NCBI RefSeq assembly: GCF_036321535.1
Contig: NC_087469.1
Coordinates: 13,454,001-13,518,000, forward strand
Reading direction: 5' to 3'
Source of the DNA: Camelus dromedarius
Taxonomy: Eukaryota
DNA length: 64,000 nt
The notes beneath the pieces are model-generated. The model worked only from the letters and a program-made list of their open reading frames with translations. It did no database searches and was not told the DNA's origin. How positions within the stretch are numbered: position 1 is the first letter of the stretch; every line of letters begins with the position of its first letter. Shown here one piece after another: positions 26,755 to 63,600 of the stretch. A program made the position numbers and the translations under genes.

Positions 26755-27155
26755 ATGGATGCTCCTGGAGAATGTCATTCTAAGTGAAGTAAGCCAGAAA
26801 GAGAAAGAAAAATACCATATGAGATCGCTCATATGTGGAATCAAAAAAAACAAACAAAAACAAAGCATAAATACAGGACAGAAATAGACTCATAGACAGA
26901 GAATACAGACTTGTGGTTGCCAGGGGGGCGGAGGGTGGGAAGGGATAGACTGGGATTTCAAAATTGTAGAATAGATAAACAAGATTATACTGTATAGCAC
27001 AGGGAAATTTACACAAAACGTTATGGTAACTAACAGAGAAAAAAATGTGACAATGAGTGTGTATATGTCCATGTATGACTGAAAAATTGTGCTGAACACT
27101 GGAATTTCACACAACATTGTAAAATGGATTATAAATCAATAAAAAATGTTAAAAA
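26755..27155 (+). mobile_element. Young L1 3' end with 17-bp TSD
   Basis: TSD aaagaaagctgcattac at 26738-26754 and 27156-27172, at a TT|AAAG endonuclease site. The paralogous site (about 55230-55270) is empty. Confidence 0.92.
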
Positions 27156-27208
27156 AAAGAAAGCTGCATTACTTTAAATCTGTTTATTATCTTTGTGGTG
27201 AGGCAAGG

Positions 27209-27535: not shown

Positions 27536-28537
27536 ATTGGTTTAAATAAGCTCATAAAACACTGCAAGGAATGTAGTTTATTATCATTAATATAAACCTT
27601 TTTATGATAAATCTTATTATAGAAGTAAAACAATGTCTTACATGTTTCTCCTAGCTTGATGTGCAGTATTTTCCTTTAAGTGATAAATAAACTCTGCAGT
27701 AAGAACTACATGCTCTTTTTCAAAATATTTGATGTCATTTTAGATCGTAATCAATGCCAGTGTTATAATAAACCAACCTCTTACTGGGGTCATAAGGTGC
27801 ATATGTATTATCCCTTTAATCATACTGTTAACGCCATCTTTGGCAGTTAAAGGTGGAGCTACATGTATTTTCTTCGATATTAAATGAACTGGGCTGATAG
27901 AGGCTCTCAAAAACAGGTGGTTTATGGTATAGATTTTGCCATACCCAAAGGGAACAAAATATAAAAAGGACAAAATATAAAAGGACAAATATATTAAAAG
28001 GACAAAATATAGAAAGAAAACTGATAAGAAAAATAGAGCAGAAGGAAAAGACCAGGGGATTCGATCATACTTTAAGCTATACAACAGTCTGTATTGAAGA
28101 CATTGTATTGACTCCTCTTCCCTATATCGGTAACAGTATTGATAAGAATGAGAATGCTTATCAAGAAGTATTTGGCACTTCTATGTTTTGGTAAGCAAGC
28201 TGTAATTTTAACTTTCTGTGATTTATGATTCACCATATTTGTCCAGATTAAGAATTACCCAGAAAATAGAAGTATGATAAAATGATTTTTTAAAAAGGTC
28301 AGCATATTGGTTCCTTTCATAAACACATCATTAGTTATTTAGTACACTGACGTAAGGTGCAAGAGATGCAGAGGCCAAATACGAGACAAGATCAGCTACA
28401 AGGAAAATGTTAAAAGAAATCTATTTTACCACATATAATACAATATGTAGAAGCAACATGGTGATAAAGATTCTTCTTGAAAAACACCAATGAAATTAAA
28501 TCATAAATTGAATTTCTTTACAATATTGCTGCTTCAA

Positions 28538-29482
28538 TTAGGACATGCTTCTCCTCTGGATTTTAAACAGGGATTTCCTAAGTGCAACCTTGACATCCTT
28601 GTTCCTCAAACTGTAGATCAGGGGATTGAGCATGGGTCCCGTATGAGTATAGAAAACAGAAGAAACTTTTCCCTGCTCCATAGATCCAGGAGAAGAACAT
28701 TTAAGATACATGAATGCTGCTGACCCATATAAAATAGAAAGAGCAATGACGTGGGAGCTACAGGTACTGAAGGCTTTCGATCTTCCTTGAGCAGATCTGA
28801 TGTGAAGAATGCTAGTGAGGATGAAGATGTAAGAAACCAGGATGGTGACACTGGGTACCGCAATATTAATACTTACCACAATAAGAACTACTAACTCGTT
28901 GACATAAGTGCTGGTGCAAGAGAGCTGGAGGAGTGGGAGGATGTCACACAAGTAATGGTTGATGATATTAACATTGCAGAAGGTTAGTCTGAGCATGCAC
29001 CCGGTGTGGGCAGAGGCTCCGGCAAATCCCATCACATATGCAGCCAGAGACAGCACCACACAGACCCGACGGGACATGGTGACCTTATACAGCAACGGAT
29101 TACAGATGGCCACATAGCGATCATAGGCCATTGAGGTCAACATATAACATTCAGAGATGACAAAAAAGAGAAAGAAAAACAGCTGAGTCATGCACCCGAC
29201 ATAGGAGATGATATTCTTCATGGACACAAAGTTCATCAGCATCTTGGGGGTGAAAACAGATGAGTAACAGAGATCAACGAAGGACAAGTTGAAGAGGAAA
29301 TAGTACATGGGGGTGTGGAGGTGAGAATTCAGACCAATAAGAATGATCAAGCCAAGATTGCCCACCAAGGTGACAATGTAGATCATCAGAAACAAGCAAA
29401 AGAGGGGTTGCTGGAGCTCTGGACGGTCTGTTAACCCGGCAAGAATAAATTCAGTCACTAAGGAGTCATTTCTAGCCAGCAT
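28538..29482 (-). CDS. OR8B3: Olfactory receptor OR8B2/OR8B3-like, copy A, 314 aa (likely start MLARNDS at 29482)
   Basis: [19 protein letters not shown]…KIQRR closely matches human OR8B2/3 as recalled. An acceptor (tcttctgttctcacag) ending at 29499 makes the 115-codon upstream extension intronic. Confidence 0.93.
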
Positions 29483-29867
29483 TCTCAACTTCGGAAATCT
29501 GTGAGAACAGAAGACAACTCCATTAATAGGAACACAGCTCTGTCCTGACAAACTGTCTTTTATATGAGCGTTATGAGAAACAGACTCAGACTGGCAGAAA
29601 TCACAGAAGTCCTCCTTTGCTTCATAGGGTCTGAAGGTACTGCCACACACACCCCTCAGCACTGAAATCACTGCCTTTGGTTGCGTGAGCTGCGTGTTAC
29701 AAAGAACTGCTCTATCTTTACTAGAAGACAGAGGGGCGGAGCCGACGAGGAACGAGCCTACCTGATGGTGAGCTTCAGGAGTGGGGATGCATCCCTGTCT
29801 CTCCCTCCTGTTCATCTGATCCCTCACTTCCTAGTTCCTGGTCATGTTTCCATTACCCTACGAGATA

Positions 29868-30150
29868 AACCTAAACCTATCCTGAAAGAAATACTGAAAG
29901 GTCTTCTCTAAATAAAAAGCAGGAATCTACAGAGCAGAGAAAACCACAATTGGAAATGCAGTAACTACAATAAACAGCAAGAGAATAAACATGAAGATGC
30001 AAAAGGGGACATCAGAATCAAAATGTGGGAGAGGGGAAGCAAGAAAATGGAGATTTTTAAAATTCTTTTTAGCATTTTGAGTCTATATGCTTACCAGCGT
30101 AAAGCAAATAAATACAGTAATGGGTTAACATACTTGAAAAACAGGGTATC
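29868..30150 (+). mobile_element. Internal L1 fragment (ORF1 end plus inter-ORF spacer) between 17-bp direct repeats; also at 58830-59112
   Basis: Encodes KPILKEILKGLL-stop, an L1 ORF1 C-terminus. Flanks are cattaccctacgagata (29851-29867) and catcaccctactagata (30151-30167). Confidence 0.7.
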
Positions 30151-31462
30151 CATCACCCTACTAGATACCTCAGTTCCCCTGTGATGACCTACAACAAAAG
30201 AGAGGATTTCTATGAGGCAGAGACCCATATACATATTTGCTGCCAGGAAGTCTCTCAGTCTATAAGGTTTTCAGATGCTTAACTACAAGAATCCAGGAAG
30301 TCAATGATCAGTAACAGGTACTGAGGTGAACCCTTGGACCCTAAGCTTTGTACTTAATCGTACACTCCAGTGTTTCCACACACTCTCCTCCTCCCTTCCA
30401 TCCTAGCTGGACAGAGAATGAATAAAGGAAGGTGGGTGTGCTTTCCTTGGTTTCGTAGGACAGCATGGAAGAGAAATGTAATTAATTTAATTGCCGATTA
30501 GGTTAGTTGTTATGTTTGTGGAAATATGCCAAGCTGTACACTTATTATGTATGTCAACTTTTCTATATGTATATTTCAACTAAGAAATTCTTAGAAACTG
30601 ATTTCTTCTTCTTCTGACGTTGCTATGTTCTGGGTTTGTCACTTGGAACTGCTACCGTTCTCCTGCTACCAGAATGAGGATGAAGCCAACACAGAGGGTG
30701 TGCTGAGAACAATGCAGGCAGTCGCATCAGAGCTCCACACTTCGGAGTTTCTTGTTTTTCAGTATCAATCCTTTCCCTCATTTTTCAGTAACAGAGAGAG
30801 TCAAAAACAGACACTTGGCTAACTCACTCTGTTTGCACTGAGGAGACTCAGTCCTGGCCCTGTCGGCGTGTTTCACCTCCACTGTCCTGGAAGAAGAACG
30901 GGCTTTGCAGATATCAAGGCTGAGCAGATGTAGTCACAGAGTCTTCTCCCTTTATTGGTAAAAGAATCATAGCCCAGATACCACGGTCTGAATCACAGCA
31001 GTCAGTCTATGGTTCAGATTAACTTTGTGGTTATAAATTTATTAAGAGACTGTGAAGGGAATCCACAGACTTGGTATCTGAGCCACCGTGTCACACAGCA
31101 CATGGCATCTGCTAAAGGCTTATAATTCTTCTGGACCTGATTAGAAATTCAGGTGTAGCTATCCCCCTAGGATCTTCCCCTCACGGTAAGCTTTTCAGGG
31201 AAGAGCAGAGGGTGAGTATTTACACTGCAATTGTGACAGTAAATGTTAATTTTCCATCAGAGATTATATATCCCCCAGAGCATAGAAGAAAGGATCCTTC
31301 CTCTCCTGTCCCTCATAAAGATGCAAATAATTAATGTCATTGAAAATTCACTAATTATAAGTCTAGGTTAACATTATTTTTAAGAATTTAAGTTCATAAA
31401 TATATATGAACATTTCAGAAAAGTTTACTTATTATGGTCCTTTAAAATATTTGAGTCCCTTT

Positions 31463-32310
31463 TTTTTTCATGATTTTCATCTGCTTTATTTTTTTTAAAC
31501 ATTTTTTATTGATTTATAACCATTTTACAATGTTGTGTCAAATTCCAGTGTTCAGCACAATTTTTCAGTCATTCATGGACATATACACACTCATTGTCAC
31601 ATTTTTTTCTCTGTGAGTTATCATTACATTTTGTGTATATTTCCCTGAGCTATACAGTGTAATCTTGTTTATCTATTCTACAATTTTGAAATCCCAGTCT
31701 ATCCCTTCCCACCCTCCACCCTCCTGGTAACCACAAGTCTGTATTCTCTGTCTGTGAGTCTATTTCTGTGCTGTACTTACGCTTTGTTTTTGTTTGTTTG
31801 TTTTTGTTTTTGTTTTTTAGATTCCACATATGAGCGATCTCATATGGTATTTTTCTTTCTCTTTCTGGCTTACTTCACTTAGAATGNNNNNNNNNNNNNN
31901 NNNNNNNNNNNNNNNNNNNNNNNNNNNNNNNNNNNNNNNNNNNNNNNNNNNNNNNNNNNNNNNNNNNNNNNNNNNNNNNNNNNNNNNNNNNNNNNNNNNN
32001 NNNNNNNNNNNNNNNNNNNNNNNNNNNNNNNNNNNNNNNNNNNNNNNNNNNNNNNNNNNNNNNNNNNNNNNNNNNTCCTGAAGTAGATTTCCTTCTGGAT
32101 ACAAGCCCAGGAGTGGGATTCCTGGGTCATATGGTAAGTCTATTCCTAGTCTTTTGAGGAATCTCCACACTGTTTTCCATAGTGGCTGCACCAAACTGCA
32201 TTCCCACCAGCAGTGTAGGACGGTTCCCCTTTCTCCACAGCCTCTCCAGCATTTGTCATTTGTGGATTTTTGAATGACGGCCATTCTGACTGGTGTGAGG
32301 TGATACCTCA
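31463..32310 (-). mobile_element. Young 5'-truncated L1 (ORF2 C-terminus plus 3'UTR) with 12-bp TSD, in copy A only
   Basis: [14 protein letters not shown]…CWRGCGE…HCWWEC. TSD ttgagtcccttt at 31451-31462 and 32311-32322. The site is empty at about 60409-60420. Masked N run at 31887-32075. Confidence 0.95.
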
Positions 32311-32599
32311 TTGAGTCCCTTTAAATTATCAGTTTTTTTTGCAAATTTTACAGACATAAATCGAAGGATCTTTTTATTTGATTTCAGAGATGACTGCCTA
32401 ATAAAACATTTACTGGTACAATAATTCCATGGAAATGGAATTACCTTGGGCTGTTCTGACGCTGTATTTGCTTTTAATAGATTAAAATCAAATCTATAAG
32501 AAAAATCAGTTAATCAGCTTCCATTACAAAGAAACATGACTTTATAATTTCCATGTATGTGTTAACTTATAATCACGCTTGTGAGAAGTCGAATTTTTA

Positions 32600-33440
32600 A
32601 AATTTTCAAATTATTTTAGATTCACAGGAAACTTCAAAACTTAGTGATAGAGTCCCTTAAAATCCACCCAGCCTCCTACCACGGTGACATGTTCTACAAC
32701 CGCAGAACAGCAGCAACACCAGGAAACTGACAGTGGTATAAGGTTAACAGGGTATGGGACTACGGATGTTATTCAGCATTAGGTAATTCTGCACGCAGCA
32801 TGTGTTTGTGTTGTGTGTATGATCCTTTTAATGTGCTGTTGGATTGGTTTGCGAGAATTCCGTTGAGAATTTTTGCATCTATGTTTATCAGAGAGACTGG
32901 CCTGTAGTTTTCAGTTCTCATAGTCTTTACCTGGCATTGTTGTGAAGGCAATTCTGGTTGTAACTGAGTTTGATGGTGTTCCCTTTCTTCAATTGTTGGA
33001 AGCATTTTAGAAGTTTTGGTCTTACTCTTGCTTAAATGTTTGGTACAATTCACAAGTNNNNNNNNNNNNNNNNNNNNNNNNNNNNNNNNNNNNNNNNNNN
33101 NNNNNNNNNNNNNNNNNNNNNNNNNNNNNNNNNNNNNNNNNNNNNNNNNNNNNNNNNNNNNNNNNNNNNNNNNNNNNNNNNNNNNNNNNNNNNNNNNNNN
33201 NCTGTTTCTTCTAGATTATCCAATTTGTTTGTGCATAATTGTTCATAGTAGTCTTATGATCTTTGGTACTACTGTGGTATCAGCTGTAATGTTTCCTCTT
33301 CATCATATCATTACCGTCTTTGTTTCATGCTATAGCTGTCGAGTTAAAGTTTATTTTGTCTGATATAAGTATAGTTACTGTTACTGTTTTTTGGTTTCCA
33401 CTTGTATAGACTATCTTTTTTCACACCCCCATTTTCAGTC
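32600..33440 (-). mobile_element. Old L1M fragments (3' part and ORF2 RT N-terminus)
   Basis: ENYRPVSLINIDAKIL; same sequence at 60700-61538. Masked N run at 33058-33201. Confidence 0.85.
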
Positions 33441-36400
33441 AACATTGTAAACTGACTATAACTCAATAAAAAAATTATAATAGAATATATTTAATATATA
33501 TTAAACTGTCTCACAGAAATTAATATTGATGTTTAAATATGTGTATTATTATTGCTTTATTTGAATTTTTTAATCTAATAAATTTGGACAAGTTTAATGT
33601 GCTAATTTGCATTTACATTTCTTTTGCTATTTGTCCACTGAATGATTTTTGGCTACTTTTTTTATGGGCTACCAGTCTTTTCTGTATTAATTAAAAAGGA
33701 ATCCATGTACTTTTGTTTTGGTCAGCTAAACTCCTTATGCTCTTCTCCACTGGTTCTGACTTTTCCTTGGGGAGTTAAGAGAATCATCCTAATAAGATTA
33801 CTAATGAATATTTTAATCATAAAGTGGGTCTTCTGTCACTTTTCATAAGACTTACTTAGAATTTCTCAGTCATACTTTTTAATTTTGAATCTTTGTCATT
33901 TTTTATTCTATTTATATTCATTATAGACTTGCTTTTTTCCTACACTGATTCGTATCTAGTTTTCTAAATTTCTAGTGTACATGAAAGAGGAATGAAACAC
34001 TCCTTTCTCCTTCCTGATATTCCTCCCATGTGTAGGAATAAGTTACTCTGACACTCCACATCCTGCTTTACACCCTTATACATACCTCCAGGGAAGCTGG
34101 AGTGACTTATCTGATTGGTTAGTTTCAAAGGAGGAACTATTCCCTTTCTTTGCGAGAGTTAGCATATTTCCAGAAAGACTATATTCTTGGTTGGCTTTTT
34201 TCCTATACAGTACCACCTCTACTGGAAGAGACCTGCAGGAAGCTTTCTGTGATCATAGTAGAAAATCTGTCTAATTCTGAGCTTAGTATTAAGAAGTTCA
34301 CTTGCCCCCAAATACACCTTTTCCAACAATAAGGATATAATAAAGATATTTTGGTCTTCACTTGACAGATTGTTAATTTACCTTCTCTATTAGTGCAGAA
34401 CAAGAGCTTTATATTTTACTTCCTCAAACAACTGTACCTTGTGCATTGGACTAGGGTTACAAAGACTTTAACAAGAGAAATAGATTTAGGAGCAAAAATG
34501 CACCTAAGAGTACTGGGCTTCTGATGGGGAGACAGGGTTTTTACCTGAGTGGCATGAAGTGACATCTTTTTTGCAACGTTTTTATAGTTTAGCATAATTT
34601 TTAATTAACAGGATTCCAGCAGGTGGCTATGAGTCTAAAACTCTCACAATGTGGGATTTTAACCTCCAGAGGTGCATCATACTGTGGGTTTGTTCAAAGG
34701 TGAGTAATTTACGTGGGTGCACATTCACTTCTGCAGAGGCCACACTGCTAGTGCTGGGTCTTAACCAAAGGCGAATGCCTCAGCAGAAGTTAAGCTCCTT
34801 GAAAAAAGGGAGCTAAGCGAGCCTCCACATAGCCATGCACCTATGGACCTTGGCAAATGTAGGCTGGGTAAGTTGGACCAGCTTCAGCGAGGGCATGAGC
34901 AGACAGTGCTGCAGCTTAAACTTGGCATGTAGAGGAACCTTTTCCCAAGAAGGTAATGATTTGATTATGAGGAAAACAAAACCTTTATATATACACATAT
35001 ATTTTTTTTTAAGAAAAGAGAGGGTAGAACAATCCTTCATTGTTTTTGCTCTATTTCCAGCCCTATATTCAAGAAATACTAGTTCCAAAACCAGTAGAGC
35101 AGATCGGCCAGGTTGCTGTAAACTGCGTTTGAGACCCAGACGTGAAACTGTGGTGAGCCTCACTGAATTACTGCGGCTTCTGCACAGGCTCAAGAACTAG
35201 TTCCCACCAGGGGTTCACTCAAATTGTCCCTGGATTTGTCAAATACATAAGCTCTGATCAGGACTTTAGATTTTTGTCTTCTACTATGGAGCTTCCCTTT
35301 AAACGGGTGGTAGATTTCATTAATGAGCAAATAAAAATGGGCAGAGGTCTTACTGTGAAAAGAATACTGTACCTTATTACACTAAGAAAGAGAAGTGGGT
35401 CAACTAAAATACTGCAAACCTAAAAGGTAAGAAGTAACTTACAGATATGGATTTGAAACACTCTTTCTAGGTAGCAAGTCTGTTTAGGAAATCAAGTGAT
35501 TTAAAAATGTTGCTTCAGTTTTATAATCATAGTAAGAACAGCAGAAAAAAGAAAAGAAAATAAAGTAGAACAAGTTAATTAAACTGAAGAGAGAGAGAGA
35601 GGGGAGAGGACAGACCACAAACCAATGTATTAGAAAATGGTAACTTAAAGGCCAGGAACCTAGATCCAGGACTCTAGTCACTGAAATATTAAAGCCACCG
35701 AAAAAAAGTTAATAGCACATATTTCCCTTAAAGACTGAATGATCTAACCAAGAGAATGAATATATGAATGGATGTGTGATTTCAACTCCCTTAGTCATCA
35801 TGGCCACAGTCCTCAGACTACCTAAGGAGCTAATGGTCCTTGAAAAGTGATATCCACTGAATAAATTACATTCAAATGGAAGCAGTCTAATCGTTAGAGT
35901 GCAAATAAGTTTTTAAGAATTTTTCTTATTCTAAATACTAAAATGCAGCTAATGCAGACAAGGTGGTCACATTCACTTTTTAAGTAGCTGTACTATTTAC
36001 TTATAGTGACTCTACTGTCATCAAAAATTCTTAATTCTCTGCAGTTAACCAGTCTACCTCACACTTCATTTTTGCAGAAGTATGAATATTACACTATCCA
36101 TGTACATTTTAATCTCATTAAATGTGTTCATCATTCCAGCCTCTAGAGGTCTTTGTGAAGAAACATGATTCTTTCATCCATTAAATTAACTCTTCTCACA
36201 ACTTCACCTCATCTGCAAATCTGATTAAAACTTTTTTTGGTACTCTTCTTCACGTCACTGAACAAAGACAAAACTGCTAAATCACATAGCTTAATTCCCA
36301 GCTGCCTAAGGTATGCATCTCTAAGACAGAATCCTATACTTAAGAGTAGAGTAATCTGGACGTTATGCACTGATGGCTGGAATGATGATGTCCCAGGGCA

Positions 36401-37337: not shown

Positions 37338-38273
37338 TCAGGACTGCAGCCTTTCCCCAACCACCCTCCTCAGTGCATTCTTCACATCCTTGTTCCTCAA
37401 GCTGTAAATCAAGGGATTCAGCATGGGGATCACCGTGGTGTAGAACACAGAGGACACTTTCTCCTGCTCCATATTATTGCCAGAAGGGGGCTTGAAATAC
37501 ATGAATGTTATAGACCCCAAAAAGATCCCCACAGCCACAAGGTGGGAGCTACAAGTGCCACAGGCTTTGGATCGTCCCTCAGCAGAGCGAATACGGAGGA
37601 TACTAGAGAGGATGAACACATAAGAGATGAGTACAGCCAGTGTTGGTGCTAAGGTGTTAACTCCCCCAATGATAAACAACAGAATCTCATTAATGTGGGT
37701 GCTGGAGCAAGAGAAGGTCAACAAGGGGAGAATATCACAAAAATAATGACTGACAGTATGAGACCCACAGAAGGACAACATTGACATCCGGGTGTTATGA
37801 ACTGTGGCCCCAAACAACCCCAGTGAATACACCACAGCCGTCATCATGGAACAGACCCTGTGGGACATGATAACATTGTAAAGCAGTGGGCTACAGATCG
37901 CAACATAGCGGTCATATGCCATGGTAGTCAGAAGGTAGCTTTCTGCAATCACAAAAATAAGGAAGAAGTAAAGCTGAGTCATGCATCCCAGAAAGGAGAC
38001 AATGTTCTTCTCTGACACAAAGTTCACCAGCATCTTTGGGGTAGTGACGGAGGAGTAACAGAGATCAATGAATGATAAATGACTGAGAAAATAATACATT
38101 GGGGAGTGAAGCTGAGAACTGTTGGCAATTAAGAGGATCATACCCAGGTTCCCCACCACTGTGACCACATATATTCCCAGGAACAGGAGGAAGAGTGGCA
38201 ACTGAAGCTCTGGGTGCTTTGTCAGTCCTTCAAGGATAAACCCAGGCACTGAGGAATAATTTAAAGTAGACAT
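37338..38273 (-). CDS. OR8D2: Olfactory receptor OR8D2-like, intact 311 aa
   Basis: [16 protein letters not shown]…[24 protein letters not shown]…[18 protein letters not shown] closely matches human OR8D2 as recalled. Acceptor ends at 38291. Confidence 0.93.
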
Positions 38274-48111: not shown

Positions 48112-49044
48112 TTAGCAGAACAACTTTTTCCTCAAAGTCTTACTCAGGGCAACTTGGACATCTTTGTTTCTCAAACTGTAGATGAAAGGATTCATCATTG
48201 GCCCCACAATGGTGTAAAACACTGTGGTCACTTTATCTTGATCCAGAGACCCGGCAGGAAAAGGCTTAAGATACATGAATGCTGATGATCCAAAGAAAAG
48301 AGAAACCACAATGATGTGGGAGCTGCAGGTACTGAAGGCTTTGGACCTGCCCTCTGTAGAACGGATGCGGAGGATGCTGGAGAGGATCAAGGTGTAAGAA
48401 ATGGAGATGGTGAGACTGGGCACTATGACATTAATGCCCACCACGATGAACACCACCAGCTCATTGATGTAGGTGCTGGTGCAGGAGAGCCGAAGGAGAG
48501 GAGGTATGTCACACATGTAATGATTGATGACGTTGCCATCACAGAAGGACAGTCTCAGCATGCATCCAGTGTGGGCCATGGCGCCCACAAGCCCCATCGC
48601 ATATGAACCCACAGTCAGCAGGAGGCAGACCTGATGGGACATGGTGACCTTGTAAAGCAGGGGCTTACAGATGGCCACATATCGGTCATAAGCCATTGAT
48701 GTCAAAATGCAGCACTCATCAATAACAAAGAAGGAGAAGAAATAGAGCTGAGCCATGCACCCTGCATAAGAGATTACGTGCTGGTTTGCAAAACTCATCA
48801 GCATTTTGGGAGTTATGACAGAAGAGTAGCAGAGGTCAATGGAGGAAAGATTGAAAAGAAAGTAATACATGGGAGTGTGCAGGTGAGGATTCAGACCGAT
48901 CAGAATAATCAAGCCAATGTTTCCCACCACAGTGACCATATATATTCCCAAGAAAATGAAAAAGAGGGGCAGCTGGAGTTCTGGCTCTTGTGTTAAACCC
49001 AGCAGGATAAACTCAGTCAGTGAAGAGTCATTCCCTAAGGCCAT
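48112..49044 (-). CDS. Olfactory receptor, family 8 subfamily B-like, intact 310 aa
   Basis: All canonical OR motifs; NDS glycosylation site; acceptor (ctttgtcctgttcccacag) ends at 49062. Confidence 0.97.
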
Positions 49045-54200: not shown

Positions 54201-55857
54201 CTGTGCCTATACCAATATACGTTTCTGTTTTCTTCTAGAAGATTTATACTTAAGCATTAAGTGTATGGTTTTGATCTCCATTTAAAATTAATTTTTGTGT
54301 ATGATGTGAAGTAGAAATCAAAGTTCACTGTTTCCCTCATGAACACATAGTACTTCCAGCATCAATTGCTTAGAAGATTTTTCTTTACCTATAGATTTAC
54401 TTAGTTGTTCAGTCAAAAATCAATTAACTGTAAAAGTGAGGATCTGTTTCTGAATATTCTGTCGTGCCCCATGGATTTATCTGTCTGTATTTATAACAAA
54501 ACTAACCAGTCTTGATTACCATATCCTGCAACTAAGTTATAAAATCAGTTAGTGTAAATCCTCTGCATCATTTAGAGTTCCCCAAGAAACAAATGCTAAG
54601 AAATGCTTAGATTTCCAAGACATTTATTGCGGTAAGTGTCTGTAAAGGATAAAATGGGAGGAAGTGGAGGTCAGTGGAAAACGCTTCAGACCAGGATGAA
54701 TGTGTGATACCTACAAAAGGAAAGCGAGAAGGAAGGATTGGGTAAGAAAATCTTAAGACCACAGTGCAGTTCAAAAAGTCTATTAGGATGACAGGAAGTC
54801 CCCAGGCAAAGATCACCTATCAGAAGACTCATGTTACACAGAAACTGATGAGTTCCGGTATGACCCACTGTGCTAAGCCACTGGCTGAGGACATCTCAGA
54901 GTAAGCATGGGCTCTGCCTGAACACCATGGTGGATCCAAAGGAGTATCAGCTAGAGACAGTCAGTGATGCTCCCACAGCTGGTTCTACTGAAGGGGAGTT
55001 AACAGCACCTCTCTATGGCTGCTACATGCCACTCCCCAAAAGAAATTATACCCCAAAGTTCTTTCGGATTATTTGTTATTGCTATTTATTATTATATTTT
55101 ATTAATCATCCCTTATAACATTAAATGTATTACTACTTTTCAAACAAGGGGATCCAATACGAGAAGTTTTTGACCTAACGCTATATTTGATACTCCAAAT
55201 ATATGAATGGGAAATGCACTGGAGAAATGGGGAAATTATAGGGAAGAGCATCTAGGTAAATATATTTATTATCTTATTGGTGAGGCAACTTTTAAGTAAT
55301 TTCACAAAATGCTGTTGATAGGAATATGGTTTATTGTCTTAACATGCACCTGTTTTTCATGATACATCACTGGAGAAGTAAAACATGGCTAAGATGTTTC
55401 TCCTAACCAAATGTGTAGTATTTTCCTTAAGCAATAAAAAACAAAATTTACAATAAGAATTATATGCTTCTTTCAAAACATTTGGTGTCATTTTAGATAG
55501 TAATGGATGCAGTTGTATAATAAACCACCCATCATGCTTATTGAGTCCTGAGATATGTATGTATTATTCCTCTAACCACCCTCTCTTAATGCTGTGTTGG
55601 CAATAAATGGTGGGCTTTTATGTGTTCTCTTGAATATTAAATGCATTTGGCTGAAAGAGGCTCTCAGAAGCAGGTGTCATGTAAAACAGATTTTGCCATT
55701 TTCAAAGGGAGTAAGAAAAGTAAGAATAATAAAAAGTAGTATGAAAAACAGAAAAGACAACATTAGGAGGATCTGAGCCTACTGCAAGCTGTCTACGCAA
55801 TTTGCAATGAAGACATTTCTTTGAATCCTCCTTGTGTATACCAGTAACAATATTGTT

Positions 55858-57112
55858 TAAAGACATTATAAACCTCTTAGAAGAAAACAGGCAAAACATC
55901 ATCTGATATAAATCTCAGCAATGTTCTCCTAGGGAAGTCTNNNNNNNNNNNNNNNNNNNNNNNNNNNNNNNNNNNNNNNNNNNNNNNNNNNNNNNNNNNN
56001 NNNNNNNNNNNNNNNNNNNNNNNNNNNNNNNNNNNNNNNNNNNNNNNNNNNNNNNNNNNNNNNNNNNNNNNNNNNNNNNNNNNNNGGGCTTAATTTCCAG
56101 AATATATAAACAACTCATACAACTATAAAGGAAAAAACAAACACCCCAATCCAAAAATAGGCGGAAGACCTAAACAAGAAATTTTCCAGTGAAGACATAC
56201 AAATGCCCAATAGGCACATAAAAAAATGCTCAATATTGCTAGTTATCAGAGAAATACAAATCAAAACTACAATGGGGTATCACCTCACACCAGTCAGAAT
56301 GGCCATCATTCAAAAGTCCACAAAGGATAAATGCTGGAGAGGGTGTGGATAAAAGGGAATCCTCCTACACTGTTTGTGGAAATGTAGTTTGGCAGAGCTG
56401 TTATGGAAAACAGTATGGAGATTCCTCAAAAGACTAAAAACAGACTTACCAGATGATCCAGCAATCCCACTCCTGGGCATATATCCAGAGGGAACTTTAA
56501 TTTGAAAAAATGCATGCACCCCAGTGTTCATAGCAGCATTATTTACAATAGCCAAGACATGGAAACAACCTAAATGTCCATCAACAGATAGCTGGATAAA
56601 GAAGTGGTGGTACATTTATACAATGGAATATTACTCAGCCATAAAATATAATAAAGCAATGACATTTGCAGCAACATGGATGGACCTGGAGATTGTCATT
56701 CTAAGTGAAGTAGGCCAGAAAAAGAAAGAAAAATACCATATAATACCACTTATATGAGGAATCTTAAAAAAAAAAAACAGGCAAACGAACTTATCTGCAA
56801 AACAGAAACTGACTCACAGACATAGAGAACAAACTTGTGGTTACCAGGGGAGGAGGGGGGTGGGAGGTGATAAATTAGAGTTTCATATTTCTAGATATTA
56901 ACTGATAAATACAGAGTAAACGAGTTTCTACTTACTGTATAGTGCAGGGAACTATATTTGATATCTTGTAGTAGCTTACAGTGAAAAAGAATATGAAAAT
57001 TAATATATGTATATTCATGTATGACTGAAGCACTGTGCTGTACACCAGAAATTGACACCACATTGTAAACTGACTATACTTAAATAAAAATACATTTATA
57101 CCAAAAAAAAAA
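55858..57112 (+). mobile_element. 5'-truncated L1 (ORF2 C-terminus, 3'UTR, A-tail), in block Y copy B only
   Basis: ORF2 C-terminal motifs ([19 protein letters not shown]) and an A-tail at about 57103-57114. Masked N run at 55941-56085. No TSD seen. Confidence 0.9.
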
Positions 57113-57499
57113 AACCACAGAGAGAATTCTTTTCCAGTATTTGGCACTTTTGTATCTAGATCAGCAAGTTCTAATTTTAACTTCATGTACTTACAAAATT
57201 CAACATATTTGTCCTGATTAGGAATAGCCCAGGAGACAAAAAAGGAGTATGAAAAAAATCAGTTCATATTTCCTTTTATAAAAATGCTATTAGTATTTAG
57301 TAAACTGTTACAAGGTGCAAGAGATAGAGGAAAAAAATGAGACAAGATTGGCTATAAGGGAAATGATGACACAAATCCATTATACCACACATAATACAAT
57401 CTGTAGAAGCAACATGGTTATGAATGAATTCTCACCTTGAAAATCATTAATAAAAATTAAGTACAAAATTGAATGTCTTTACATTATTGCTGTTTCTAA

Positions 57500-58444
57500 T
57501 TAGAACATGTTTCTCCTCTGGATTTTAAACAGGGATTTCTTCAGTGCAACTTTGACATCCCTGTTCCTCAAACTGTAGATCAGGGGATTGAGCATGGGTC
57601 CCACATTAGTATAGAAAACAGAAGAAACTTTTCCCTGCTCCATAGATCCAGGAGAAGAATATTTAAGATACATAAATGCTGCTGAACCAAAAAAAAGGGA
57701 AAGAGCAATGACGTGGGAGCTACAGGTACTGAAAGCTTTTGATCTTCCTTGAGCAGATCTGATGTGAAGAATGCTAGTGAGGATGAAGATGTAAGAAACC
57801 AGGATGGTGACACTGGGTACCGCAATATTAATACTTACCACAATAAGAACTACTAACTCGTTGACATAAGTGCTGGTGCAAGAGAGTTGGAGGAGTGGGA
57901 GGATGTCACACAAGTAATGGTTGATGATATTAACATTGCAGAAGGTTAGTCTGAGCATGCACCCGGTGTGGGCAGAGGCTCCGGCAAATCCCATCACATA
58001 TGCAGCCAGAGACAGCACCACACAGACCCGACGGGACATGGTGACCTTATACAGCAACGGATTACAGATGGCCACATAGCGATCATAGGCCATTGAGGTC
58101 AACATATAACATTCAGAGATGACAAAAAAGAGAAAGAACAACAGCTGAGTCATGCACCCAACATAGGAGATGATATTCTTCATGGACACAAAGTTCATCA
58201 GCATCTTGGGGGTGAAAACAGATGAGTAACAGAGATCAACGAAGGACAAGTTGAAGAGGAAATAGTACATGGGGGTGTGGAGGTGAGAATTTAGACCAAT
58301 AAGAATGATCAAGCCAAGATTGCCCACCAAGGTGACAATGTAGATCATCAGAAACAAGCAAAAGAGGGGTTGCTGGAGCTCTGGACGGTCTGTTAACCCG
58401 GCAAGAATAAATTCAGTCACTAAGGAGTCATTTCTAGCCAGCAT
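57500..58444 (-). CDS. OR8B3: Olfactory receptor OR8B2/OR8B3-like, copy B, 314 aa (likely start at 58444)
   Basis: Same as copy A. The C-terminal [11 protein letters not shown]…KIQRRNMF is closer to the human OR8B3 sequence as recalled. Confidence 0.93.
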
Positions 58445-60699
58445 TCTCAACTTCGGAAATCTGTGAGAACAGAAGACAACTCCATTAATAGGAACACAGC
58501 TCTGTCCTGACAAACTGTCTTTTATATGAGCGTTATGAGAAACAGACTCAGACTGGCAGAAATCACAGAAGTCCTCCTTTGCTTCATAGGGTCTGAAGGT
58601 ACTGCCACACACACCCCTCAGCACTGAAATCACTGCCTTTGGTTGCGTGAGCTGCGTGTTACAAAGAACTGCTCTATCTTTACCAGAAGACAGAGGGGCG
58701 GAGCCGACGAGGAACGAGCCTACCTAATGGTGAGCTTCAGGAGTGGGGATGCATCCCTGTCTCTCCCTCCTGTTCATCTGATCCCTCACTTCCTAGTTCC
58801 TGGTCATGTTTCCATTACCCTACGAGATAAACCTAAACCTATCCTGAAAGAAATACTGAAAGGTCTTCTCTAAATAAAAAGCAGGAATCTACAGAGCAGA
58901 GAAAACCACAATTGGAAATGCAGTAACTACAATAAACAGCAAGAGAATAAACATGAAGATGCAAAAGGGGACATCAGAATCAAAATGTGGGAGAGGGGAA
59001 GCAAGAAAATGGAGATTTTTAAAATTCTTTTTAGCATTTTGAGTCTATATCCTTACCAGCCTAAAGCAAATAAATACAGTAATGGGTTAACATACTTGAA
59101 AAACAGGGTATCCATCACCCTACTAGATACCTCAGTTCCCCTGTGATGACCTACAACAAAAGAGAGGATTTCTATGAGGCAGAGACCCATATACATATTT
59201 GCTGCCAGGAAGTCTCTCACAGTCTATAAGGTTTTCAGATGCTTAACTACAAGAATCCAGGAAGTCAATGATCAGTAACAGGTACTGAGGTGAACCCTTG
59301 GACCCTAAGCTTTGTACTTAATCGTACATTCCAGTGTTTCCACACATTCTCCTCCTCCCTTCCATCCTAGCTGGACAGAGAATGAATAAAGGAAGGTGGG
59401 TGTGCTTTCCTTGGTTTTGTAGGACAGCATGGAAGAGAAACGTAATTAATTTAACTGCTGATTTAGTTAGTTGTTATGTTTGTGGAAATATGCCAAGCTG
59501 TACACTTATTACGTATGTCAAGTTTTCTATATGTATATTTCAACTAAGAAATTCTTAGAAACTGATTTCTTCTTCTTCTGACGTTGCTATGTTCTGGGTT
59601 TGTCACTTGGAACTGCTACCGTTCTCCTGCTACCAGAATGAGGATGCAGCCAACACAGAGGGTGTGCTGAGAACAATGCAGGCAGTCGCGTCAGAGCTCC
59701 AGACTTCGGAGTTTCTTGTTTTTCAGTATCAATCCTTTCCCTCATTTTTCAGCAACAGAGAGACAAAAACAGACACTTGGCTAACTCACTCTGTTTCCAC
59801 TGAGGAGACTCAGTCCTGGCCCTGTAGGCGTGTTTCACCTCCACTGTCCTGGAATAAGAACGGACTTTGCAGATATCAAAGCTGAGCAGATGTAGTCACA
59901 GAGTCTTCTCCCTTTATTGGTAAAAGAATCATAGCCCAGATACCACAGTCTGAATCATAGCAGTCAGTCTATGGTTCAGAGTAATCTTGTGGTTATAAAT
60001 TTATTAAGAGACTGTGAAGGGAAACCACAGACTTGGTATCTGAGCCACCGTGTCACACAGCACATGGCATCTGCTAAAGGCTTATAATTCTTCTGGACCT
60101 GATTAGAAATCCAGGTGTAGCTGTCCCCCTAGGATCTTCCCCTCATGGTAAGCTTTTCAGGGAAGAGCAGAGGGTGCGCATTTACACTATAATTGTGACA
60201 GTAAATGTTAATTTTCCATCAGAGATTATATATCCCCCAGAGCATAGAAGAAAGGATTCTCTCCTGTCCCTCATAAAGATGCAAATAATTAATGTCATTG
60301 AAAATTCACTAATTATAAATCTAGGTTAACATTATTTTTAAGAATTTAAGTTCATAAATATATATGAACATTTCAGAAAAGTTTACTTACTATGGCCCTT
60401 TAAAATATTTGAGTCCCTTTAATCAGTTTTTATACAAATTTTACAGACAAAAATCAAAGGATCTTTTTATTTGATTTCAGAGATGATTGCCTAATAAAAC
60501 ATCTACTGGTAGAATAATTCCATGGAAATGGAATTACCTTAGGCCGTTCTGATGCTGTATGTATTTGCTTTTTATAGATTAAAATCAAATCTATAAGAAA
60601 AATCACTGTTAATCAGCTTCCATTACAAAGAAACATGACTTTATAATTTCCATGTATGTGTTAACTTATAATCACGCTTGTGAGAAGTCGAATTTTTAA

Positions 60700-63600
60700 A
60701 ATTTTCAAATTATTATAGATTCACAGGAAATTTCAAAACTTAGGGATAGAGTCCCTTGAAATCCACCCAGCCTCTTACCACGGTGACATGTTCTACAACC
60801 GCAGAACAGCAGCAACACCAGGAATTTGACGTTGGTATAAGGTTAACAGGGTATGGGACTACAGATGTTATTCAGCATTAGGTAATTCTGCACGCAGCAT
60901 GTGTTTGTGTTGTGTGTATGATCCTTTTAATGTGCTGTTGGATTGGTTTGTGAGATTTCCGTTGAGAATTTTTGCATCTATGTTTATCAGAGATACTGGC
61001 CTGTAGTTTTCAGTTCTCACCGTCTTTACCTGACATTGTTGTGAAGGCAATTCTGGTTGTAACTGAGTTTGATGGTGTTCCCTTTCTTCAATTGTTGGAA
61101 GCATTTTAGAAGTTTTGGTCTTACTCTTGCTTAAATGTTTGGTACAATTCACAAGTNNNNNNNNNNNNNNNNNNNNNNNNNNNNNNNNNNNNNNNNNNNN
61201 NNNNNNNNNNNNNNNNNNNNNNNNNNNNNNNNNNNNNNNNNNNNNNNNNNNNNNNNNNNNNNNNNNNNNNNNNNNNNNNNNNNNNNNNNNNNNNNNNNNN
61301 NNNNNNNNNNNNNNNNNNNNNNNNNNNNNNNNNNNNNNNNNTCATAGTAGTCTTACGATCTTTGGTACTACTGTGGTATCAGCTGTAATGTTTCCTCTTC
61401 GTCATATCATTACCGTCTTTGTTTCATGCTATAGCTGTCGAGTTAAAGTTAATTTTGTCTGATATAAGTATAGTTACTGTTACTGTTTTTTGGTTTCCAC
61501 TTGTATAGAATATCTTTTTCACATCCCCACTTTCAGTCTATGTGCTAAAGCTAAAGTAAGTCTCTTGCGTGCAGCAGGCAACTAGGTCTCTTTTTCGTTC
61601 TGTTTTAATCCATTCAGCCACTCTATGCCTTTTGACTGAAGAATTTAAACCAATTACGTTTACAGTGATGATTGATAGGTAACGACTTACTAATGCCATC
61701 TTAATTGCTCTCTGGCTGTTTTATAATTCCCTTGTTCTTTTTTTCCTCTCTTGGTGTCTTCTTTTGTGACTTGATGAATTTCTCTAATGTTATGTTCCTA
61801 TTCTCTTCTCTTTATCTTTTTGTATCTAATGTAGGCTTTTGCTTTGTGATTACCATGAGACTTACATAAAGTATTTCGCAGGTATAACACTATCTTAAGG
61901 TGATAACAGCTTAACTGTGATCACATACAAAAATATTACCCTTTTCCTCCCTCATTCTGATGTCACAATTTACCTCATTGCATGTTATGTATCCATTAGC
62001 AAATTATTGTAGCTATAGTTATTTTTAATAGTTTTGTCCTTTAACTTTTTCTTGAGTTGAGTGGTTAACACACCACCATCTTACATAGTATTGTATTCTG
62101 AAATTGACTAGATTTTTTTACTTACCAGTGTATTGTATATTTTATGTTCCATGTTACTAATTAGTATTCTTTTGTTTCAGCTTGAAGAGCTGCTTTCAGC
62201 ATCTCTTTTACAGCAGGTCTAGTGCTGATTAATTCCCTCAACTTGTGTTTGTTTGGTAAAGTTTTATCTCACCTTCATTTTTTTTAACACTTTTTATTGA
62301 GTTATAATCATTTATTGAGTATATAATCATATAATAATTTTATTGAGTTATCATATAATCATTGTCAAATTCCAGTGAAGAGCACAATTTTTCAGTTATA
62401 CATGAACACATATATATTCGCTGTCACATTTTTTTCTCTGTGAGCTACCATAAGATCTTGTATACATTTCCCTGTGCTATACAGTATAATCTTGTTTATC
62501 TATTCCACATTTTGAAATCCCAGTTGTGTCCCTTCCCACCCCCCGCCCCCTTGGCAACCACAAGTTTGTATTCTATGTCTATGAGTGTGTTTCTGATTTG
62601 TATTTATGTTCATCACCTTCATTTCTGAAAGACAACTCTGCTGGTAAAAGTATTTTTGGTTAGCAGGGCAGTTTTTCCCTTCAGCACTTGGAGTATATTA
62701 TTTCACTCCCTTCCTGGGCTACAAGGTTTCTCCTGAGAAATCTGCTGATAGTCTAGTGGGGGGTTCCCTTGCAACTGAAGATTATTTTTCCTTTGGCTGC
62801 TCTTAAATTCTTTGATTTTAGACAGCTTAATTACAGTGTGTCTTGGAGAAGATTGTTTTGAGTTGTGATACTGGGTAACCTTTTAACTTCATGAAGCTGG
62901 ATTCCAAAAATCTCCCCAGATTTGGGATGTTCTTAGCCATTACTCTTCTAAATAAGCTTTCTGCCCCTTTCTCCATCTTTCTCCTGCTGGGAAATAATGC
63001 CTACAATGTTTCTCTTAATGATATCCCATAGTAGGCTTATTCATGCTTTTTAAAAAATTTTTTTTCTGGTTCTCTTCTAACTGAATAATTTCAAATGTCC
63101 AGTCTTCTACTTCACAGACTCATCCTTCTGCTTGATCTAACCTGATGCCAATGGTCTCTATCACATTTTTTTTTCATTTCATTCATTGTATTCTTTAGCT
63201 CCAAATTTCTATTTGGTTCTTTTTTATTTCTCTCTATTAAGCATCTCATTTTGTTTCTGTTTTGTTTTCATGATTTCTTTGAACCATCTTTCTGTGTTTT
63301 CTTGTAGCTTGCTGAGCTCCCATAAAATAGCTATTTTAAATTCTTATCAGGCAAATCACAGACCTCCATTTCTTTGGGGTCAGTTTCTGGAAAATTATTG
63401 TGTTCCTTTGGTGGTGTCACATTACACTGATTTTTCAAATTCCTTGAAGACTCTGTTGTTGTCTTCGTATCTGAAGAAGTAGTCATTGCCTCTAGTCTTT
63501 CTGACTGGCTTCAGGAGAGAATTACCTTCTGTCAGTCCTGCTAGTAATTCTGGCACTTTCTGATCTTCTCTAGGTGACATCTGCTCTACATTTCTTGTTC
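60700..63600 (-). mobile_element. Old L1M (ORF2 5' part to ORF1), interrupted by a young L1 tail
   Basis: Continuous degenerate antisense L1. Masked N run at 61157-61341. Confidence 0.8.
62281..62612 (-). mobile_element. Young L1 3' end with 12-bp TSD
   Basis: TSD tcaccttcattt at 62269-62280 and 62613-62624; same family as 26755-27155. Confidence 0.88.

Follow-up and report, generated by a model that had tools for sequence, protein, structure and literature searches.

A tandem OR8B3-like olfactory receptor pair in camels with a divergence boundary inside the coding sequence: a probable record of recurrent gene conversion

Introduction

How can two neighboring genes be nearly identical over the first three-quarters of their coding sequence (CDS) and the DNA upstream of it, and differ at one site in fourteen over the rest? 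The question is raised by a stretch of 64,000 nucleotides (nt) of the dromedary genome (Camelus dromedarius, assembly GCF_036321535.1, contig NC_087469.1, positions 13,454,001 to 13,518,000), referred to here as the window, which contains six complete olfactory receptor (OR) open reading frames (ORFs), all on the minus strand. Two of them, copy A and copy B, are OR8B3-like genes separated by 28,962 nt. A preliminary description of the sequence proposed that the divergence between the two copies switches abruptly inside the CDS, and that the switch marks either repeated interlocus gene conversion or a chimera made by unequal crossover. We find that A and B are very probably a tandem OR8B3-type pair which was duplicated before the camelid–ruminant split and has undergone repeated nonreciprocal interlocus gene conversion ever since, and that the exchange is still active within Camelus. 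The analysis demonstrates the divergence strata and their breakpoints, incongruent trees along the gene, and an A-to-B transfer of a segment of transmembrane helix 5 (TM5) in the camel lineage.

Both copies are single-exon ORFs with the expected OR motifs readable in their translations, and precomputed Pfam assignments give PF13853 and PF00001. The nearest named proteins outside camelids are OR8B3 or OR8B3-like (about 88% identity), and the exact protein sequences occur in camelid records only. For human OR8B3, PMC10044402 lists carvone as ligand. Judged by sequence, the two genes belong to the mammalian class II ORs, family 8 subfamily B (OR8B3-like). The 3' flanks identify A as the orthologue of a deer locus annotated as “8B3-like” (L012) and B as the orthologue of a deer locus annotated as “8B3” (L011).

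Divergence Between the Copies

Substitutions were counted after A 28000-31470 and B 56970-60430 had been aligned globally. The counts given in the preliminary description were reproduced exactly: 18 A/B substitutions are located at the 243 sites of 28538-28780 (7.4%), whereas 6 are at the 1290 sites of 28781-30070 (0.47%; P = 1.3e-10, Fisher test). Four of these 6 lie in the CDS (28925, 29177, 29198, 29330) and two upstream (29722, 29764), and the 18 changes in the 3' CDS comprise 11 nonsynonymous and 7 synonymous ones. The pairwise breakpoint test that had been suggested, a MaxChi scan, peaks at 28779, with the observed value reached in 4 of 2000 permutations. A changepoint model chosen by the Bayesian information criterion (BIC) fits best with four segments, broken at 28505, 28779 and 30365. 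The low-divergence tract reported earlier is therefore real but reaches a little beyond the end first given for it, position 30070: it covers 1586 nt (28779-30364), with 8 substitutions and an indel of 2 nt. The switch had been placed just before the motif KAFSTC, and it is there that we can bracket it, at 28779-28796, between the last site grouping the copies by species (28797; see below) and the first A/B difference that is fixed (28778). The sequence of this bracket shows no repeat or motif.

Outside the core, divergence is higher on both sides. In the 3' flank (28166-28537), 84 of 358 sites differ (23.5%), and downstream of both copies an older collinear paralogy of 70-73% identity continues for about 3 kb (to 25322 at A), broken by private repeat insertions. 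Upstream, divergence is 3.3% at 30365-31462 and about 5% at 32311-33451, past an insertion private to A, and the homology between the copies ends at 33451 (A) and 61549 (B). The GC content of the block, which consists of the CDS and the promoter-proximal region, is 40-45% against 30-36% in its surroundings. Coordinates of these features are given in Table 1. Purifying selection was considered as the cause of the low core divergence and was rejected, since the 880 nt of noncoding upstream sequence are as similar between the copies as the coding part.

Table 1 Features of the OR8B3-like pair, in window positions
Feature	Position	Strand	Remarks
Copy A, OR8B3-like OR CDS, intact	28538..29482	-	314 codons and stop; ORF and translation; Pfam 7tm_4/7tm_1; OR8B3 names
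Copy B, OR8B3-like OR CDS, intact	57500..58444	-	314 codons and stop; ORF and translation
Youngest conversion stratum, copy A	28779..30364	-	Codons 1-234 of the 5' CDS and 0.88 kb upstream; 0.5% from B
Youngest conversion stratum, copy B	57741..59328	-	Based on A/B alignment, changepoints, site patterns and Camelus patchwork
3' limit of recent Camelus conversion tracts (bracket)	28779..28796	-	Codons 229-235, just before KAFSTC
Intermediate stratum, copy A	28538..28778	-	Last 80 codons, TM6 to C-terminal tail; 7.5% from B; synonymous divergence (pS) 0.12
Intermediate stratum, copy B	57500..57740	-	Protein stays near that of other mammals
Old unconverted 3' flank, A	28150..28537	-	23-26% from B flank; orthologous to 3' flank of deer L012
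Old unconverted 3' flank, B	57122..57499	-	Orthologous to 3' flank of deer L011
Older upstream stratum, A	30365..33451	-	3.3-5% from B; patches converted before and after the camel–alpaca split
Older upstream stratum, B	59329..61549	-	Counterpart of A 30365..33451
Repeat insertion private to A	31463..32310	.	Contains masked N run
Repeat insertion private to downstream flank of B	55856..57121	.	Masked N run; breaks the old collinear paralogy

Comparison with Alpaca and Deer

The alpaca also has two copies on the same strand. Camel A and B were aligned with alpaca A and B, and informative sites were classed as “species” sites, which group the copies by species, or “paralogue” sites, which group A with A and B with B. 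The patterns are all-or-none in the coding region and its proximal upstream sequence: 28797-30345 contains 32 species-pattern and no paralogue-pattern sites, and the 3' CDS (28538-28736) contains 14 paralogue-pattern and no species-pattern sites. Alpaca shares 14 of the 18 differences seen in the 3' CDS. The 3' flank has 73 paralogue-pattern sites versus a single species-pattern site, and the upstream region 30365-33451 is a mosaic of patches that predate and patches that postdate the camel–alpaca split. The species-pattern sites indicate that the copies exchanged sequence after camel and alpaca separated.

Comparison with the deer loci places the duplication itself. The 3' flank of camel A differs from that of L012 by 21.8% and from that of L011 by 29.8%, and the 3' flank of camel B differs from that of L011 by 22.7% and from that of L012 by 29.0%; 29 sites support this orthology versus 6 that group the flanks by lineage. 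The CDS gives the opposite result, with 57 lineage-pattern sites in its 5' part and 9 in its 3' part, and no orthologue-pattern site in either. The flanks of A and B are thus orthologous to different deer loci, so the duplication predates the camelid–ruminant split.

Maximum likelihood (ML) trees were built separately for the two parts of the CDS and for the 3' flank, with the alpaca and fallow deer loci included; in these trees and in the alignments used for nonsynonymous-to-synonymous divergence ratios (pN/pS), columns 28581-28636 were masked. The tree for codons 1-234 groups the genes by lineage, and the approximately unbiased (AU) test rejects a clade of A-types (P = 0.0034). In the tree for codons 235-314, the camelid A-types form a clade (100/99) apart from the B-types, and the deer pair is separate. 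In the flank tree, A joins deer L012 and B joins deer L011 (100/99 on each side). Separate trees for the two parts of the CDS, with orthologues, had been proposed as a check, a single shared tree being the outcome that would speak against conversion; instead the topologies differ and are well supported. Taken together, the incongruent trees and the all-or-none site patterns support repeated interlocus gene conversion leaving nested strata, as first proposed.

One may ask whether the similarity is instead that of a young duplication of the CDS and its upstream region, followed by very fast evolution of the 3' end and no conversion at all. The A-type tail did evolve fast: its stem branch in the 3' CDS tree is 0.061 versus 0.016 for the B-type. 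But the flanks make the duplication old, the noncoding upstream sequence is as similar between the copies as the CDS, and the species-pattern sites require exchange after the camel–alpaca split. We give this explanation practically no weight, and it was rejected as contradicted by flank orthology and by the trees.

The unequal crossover named in the preliminary description calls for a closer look. A single nonallelic homologous recombination (NAHR) event between old paralogues might have made a chimeric gene, with the strata as later mutational noise. The young 5' block and the old 3' flank do meet at a sharp junction inside the coding region, and according to PMC1995454 unequal crossover is known to expand OR clusters. 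Such an event, however, should leave a third gene and a duplication or deletion of the entire 29-kb interval. The A–B interval is not duplicated, and the upstream homology stops at 33451/61549. Copy number and gene order were judged from the stretches fetched around the loci; in these, camel, alpaca and deer have exactly two copies with orthologous flanks on the same strand (29.0, 22.5 and 21 kb apart, respectively), no third OR8B3-type copy was found, and deer retains the camel order of B, a g48-like OR, and A. Furthermore, one event cannot produce four significantly different levels of divergence, species-pattern sites in two lineages, or a different mosaic in each camel species. An NAHR chimera is therefore very improbable, and with neither a third copy nor a duplicated interval in the stretches fetched it was rejected.

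The same architecture recurs in other mammals. The fallow deer pair diverges by 1% over codons 1-234, by 14% over codons 269-314 and by 32% in the 3' flank. At the protein level, bison and donkey pairs have, as in deer, a homogenized N-terminal part and a divergent C-terminal tail.

Probable Exchange Within Camelus

A and B were compared in four assemblies of three Camelus species, namely two of the dromedary (including CamDro3) and one each of C. bactrianus and C. ferus. The four assemblies agree on every one of the 18 differences in the 3' CDS, and each has an A/B divergence of 0.1-0.6% in the 5' CDS. Within the core, the species form a patchwork that no single tree fits. Sites 29177, 29198 and 29330 are differently distributed across species and copies; a block at 30082-30207 is specific to the Bactrian camel, and one at 30454-30548 in dromedary A keeps alpaca-like states. 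This patchwork fits a core stratum younger than the radiation of Camelus.

Near-identical paralogues are prone to cross-polishing, and collapse or mis-polishing of an assembly could make 1.6 kb look more alike than it is; several core sites do appear swapped between paralogues when CamDro3 is compared with the window. This explanation would have to hold in four assemblies of three species, with the same 3' differences and the same low 5' divergence in each, and the architecture is found, with its own details, in alpaca and deer as well. Because the architecture is shared by these assemblies, and 14 of the differences by alpaca, we do not regard it as an artefact. Among public sequencing runs, 20 from 8 studies contain 85-95% of the sampled words of the A stretch, and 19 runs carry the window-specific haplotype of 30440-30560 in full. 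Assembly error was already judged the less likely cause in the preliminary description, since the copies carry distinct old flanks and a private L1; this argument stands, and with the further assemblies such an error becomes highly improbable.

The disagreement between the two dromedary assemblies concerns 29330-30383 (B: 58292-59347) and 30454-30548 of the window against CamDro3 (L004/L008). CamDro3 B has A-type letters at six sites and an indel, and CamDro3 A has B-type letters at 30454-30548. These discordances could be segregating conversion tracts or other polymorphism, or could be due to cross-polishing.

Three further Camelus records touch the same region. In copy B of the domestic C. 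bactrianus (GCA_048773025.1, L009:3001-3953), 8 nt are inserted in the 5' CDS at the position that corresponds to window 57790 (A 28828), which shifts the reading frame; the gene model is tagged “LOW QUALITY” and has two extra residues, and the insertion is absent from the dromedary and C. ferus. It may be a genuine pseudogenizing indel or an error of the assembly. An earlier dromedary model of 257 amino acids (XP_031299176.1) equals copy A to about residue 229 and continues with another TM6 (STEGRQKTFSTCSAH...), the switch coinciding with the position of the conversion boundary; the window does not encode this alternative tail, and a look-up of the model (P0127) gave no locus. A superseded C. 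bactrianus protein (P0129, XP_045377611.1) has an A-type tail to residue 294 and a B-type one from R295, which would mean either another mosaic inside the 3' CDS or chimeric assembly of the older genome of this species.

Copy A of dromedary, Bactrian and wild camel contains the A-private repeat insertion (97-100% identity), which alpaca A and all B copies lack, so it was inserted in the Camelus stem. It has been neither removed nor copied by conversion, though the sequences on both sides of it show exchange that postdates the camel–alpaca split. A related element lies inverted at 26776-27164 (91% identity).

A Probable Layered Conversion History

Recurrent conversion very probably accounts for the four strata, as follows. 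Exchange would be anchored in the 5' three-quarters of the CDS and, in camelids, would extend also over about 4 kb upstream; the tracts would end inside the coding region, immediately before KAFSTC, a motif at the beginning of TM6. The 3' flank, at 23-26% divergence, would never have been exchanged since the duplication. The last 80 codons (7.5%) would have been homogenized for the last time in the camelid stem, after the camelid–ruminant split and before that of camel and alpaca. The distal upstream region (3-5%) would be a mosaic dating from about the time of the latter split, and the core (0.5%), with exchange continuing in Camelus, would be roughly 2 million years (My) old by scaling and younger than the Camelus radiation. 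For these dates, divergences were scaled by the camel–alpaca divergence of the flanks (4.0-4.6%) and by published split dates: about 16 My for Camelini–Lamini, about 5 My for the dromedary versus the two-humped camels, and 41-43 My, or 65 My by TimeTree, for Camelidae–Bovidae (PMC5577142). In the tail, pS is 0.12 between A and B, 0.05-0.07 between camel and alpaca, and 0.18-0.24 between camel and deer. The homogenization in stem camelids overwrote an older A-type tail (MDLGK...KDIKV) that deer and donkey still have in common.

Exchange seems to run both ways. At codons 193-210, a TM5 segment, alpaca B is deer-like and camel B has the derived A-type sequence, which establishes an A-to-B transfer in the camel lineage. 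The upstream regions of both camelid copies are 21-22% from deer L011 and about 25% from L012, which would point to transfer from B to A; the figure of 38% obtained for the proximal 400 nt of L012 stands for nonalignable sequence and not for greater age. For the tight cluster of A-type changes at 28724-28736, no third paralogue that could have been the donor was found in the window within 5 mismatches.

Several points weigh against this account of repeated conversion. The upstream B-to-A direction is only weakly indicated, given the small gap between 21-22% and about 25%. A signature of GC-biased conversion cannot be read from the 15 species-pattern sites that could be polarized, which are too few (7 weak-to-strong, 4 strong-to-weak and 4 neutral changes). 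A homogenized block of 4-5 kb is long for one mammalian conversion tract, and must have built up over many events or come from a single exceptional one. Finally, part of the Camelus patchwork could consist of polishing errors between near-identical paralogues, for which CamDro3 and the wild camel are candidates, and one CamDro3 discordance conflicts with the haplotype carried by 19 runs.

The 3' Limit of Conversion

Why does the end of the CDS escape? The cause may well be mechanical, namely the loss of homology beside the unconverted 3' flank. Tracts would have to resolve inside homologous sequence, which the adjoining flank does not offer, and the CDS end would then be converted least often. 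Once it had diverged by several per cent, mismatches would bar further exchange, and camel and alpaca would simply have inherited the same mismatches. The limit falls at codons 229-235 in camel, at codons 210-242 in alpaca (first tail difference at 242) and at codons 242-269 in deer; in every lineage it is in the last quarter of the CDS, beside a flank without homology. A boundary that has no motif, varies by lineage and always adjoins nonhomologous sequence favors the mechanical reading.

The main alternative for this step is that selection holds the limit in place. The two receptors would need different TM6-TM7-tail modules while sharing the promoter and TM1-TM5, and haplotypes that erase the difference would be removed. 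The A-type tail has seven derived residues at positions conserved among mammals (I250, L251, Y252, C262, H280, T281, S314), all found in camel and alpaca; between these two, each tail evolves more slowly than under neutrality (pN/pS 0.43 for A, 0.19 for B); and both dromedary ORFs are intact. The tails of deer, bison and donkey escape as well, and the two tail types keep their orthology across species while the N-terminal parts are homogenized within species (tail identity is 85% between proteins P0009 and P0022 versus 70% between P0006 and P0022). However, the boundary position differs among camel, alpaca and deer, and a boundary common to camel and alpaca is to be expected in any case because the mismatches were inherited. 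The ancient A-type tail was itself overwritten in stem camelids, so the tail was not always protected, and its pN/pS between A and B (0.57-0.92) is explained as well by relaxed constraint on A as by adaptation. We consider selection on the tail possible but rather doubtful.

Extended to artiodactyls and perissodactyls, the same idea would make the genes a long-lived “modular” pair, in which conversion equalizes promoter-proximal DNA and TM1-TM5 and selection keeps two TM6-TM7-tail modules. This is an unlikely, speculative extension. If true, the two receptors would share expression control and the front half of the binding pocket and differ in activation or tuning, and camelids would have lost the old second module and acquired a new one with changes in otherwise invariant parts of TM6 and TM7, including FFG to LYG.

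Relation to Known Systems

In the primate L and M opsins, tandem paralogues of G protein-coupled receptors are mostly homogenized by conversion and differ at a few decisive sites, where selection on spectral tuning has been demonstrated; for the tail of the camel receptors, selection is no more than possible (pN/pS 0.2-0.9). The human fetal globin genes HBG1 and HBG2, a tandem pair, are said to be near-identical in their 5' parts and divergent in their 3' parts, with a sharp intragenic conversion boundary at a simple-sequence (TG)n stretch. The camel genes resemble them in the sharp intragenic boundary, but 28779-28796 shows no such repeat. As a lead only, neighboring OR paralogues of the mouse MOR28 cluster reportedly have coding regions homogenized by conversion between diverged flanks; in the camel pair, by contrast, homogenization takes in the upstream region but spares the C-terminal quarter.

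Gene conversion mosaics among ORs are already established and the mechanism is textbook knowledge, so the camel pair is a clean worked example of modest general interest. Tandem primate OR paralogues exchange coding parts, which yields mosaic receptors and partial or complete homogenization (Sharon et al. 1999, Genomics 61:24, as cited in PMC1995454). The camel pair differs from the primate mosaics in being traced by flank orthology across camelids and a ruminant, with exchange going back beyond the camelid–ruminant split; in camelids, moreover, exchange reaches about 4 kb upstream, and its 3' limit is mapped to 18 nt. A look for literature on OR8B2/OR8B3 gene conversion or on camel ORs turned up nothing specific.

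The value of the locus lies in its well-resolved record, with four dated strata, an 18-nt bracket for the tract end, at least one transfer direction, and replicate histories in camel, alpaca and deer. It also carries a warning. Coding sequence alone can mislead when OR “orthologues” or “recent duplicates” are called: in this pair, that the duplication predates the camelid–ruminant split is visible only in the flanks; this bears on birth-and-death estimates of OR repertoires and on dN/dS scans in camelids. If the tail is protected by selection, the pair would be a simple system for the contribution of TM6-TM7 and the C-terminal tail to odorant receptor function.

Annotation and Neighboring Genes

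In the annotation of dromedary copy B (L006:3001-17549), the gene range is 14.5 kb and there is a second product of 310 amino acids (P0122), the last residues of which are replaced (…KKSLTRRKI). Such a product presupposes a predicted splice that leaves the CDS close to its 3' end and joins an exon further downstream, which is unusual in a single-exon OR. The deer orthologues of A and of the window gene at 48112-49044 are just 3.9 kb apart, that of A being the downstream one (L012:1-4000). Between these two genes camel has the OR gene at 37338-38273, which seems to lack a counterpart at that place in deer. At 7-1348, on the plus strand and thus opposite to all other ORs, the window holds an OR-like sequence truncated by the window start, with 67-72% identity to the 3' halves of other OR genes.

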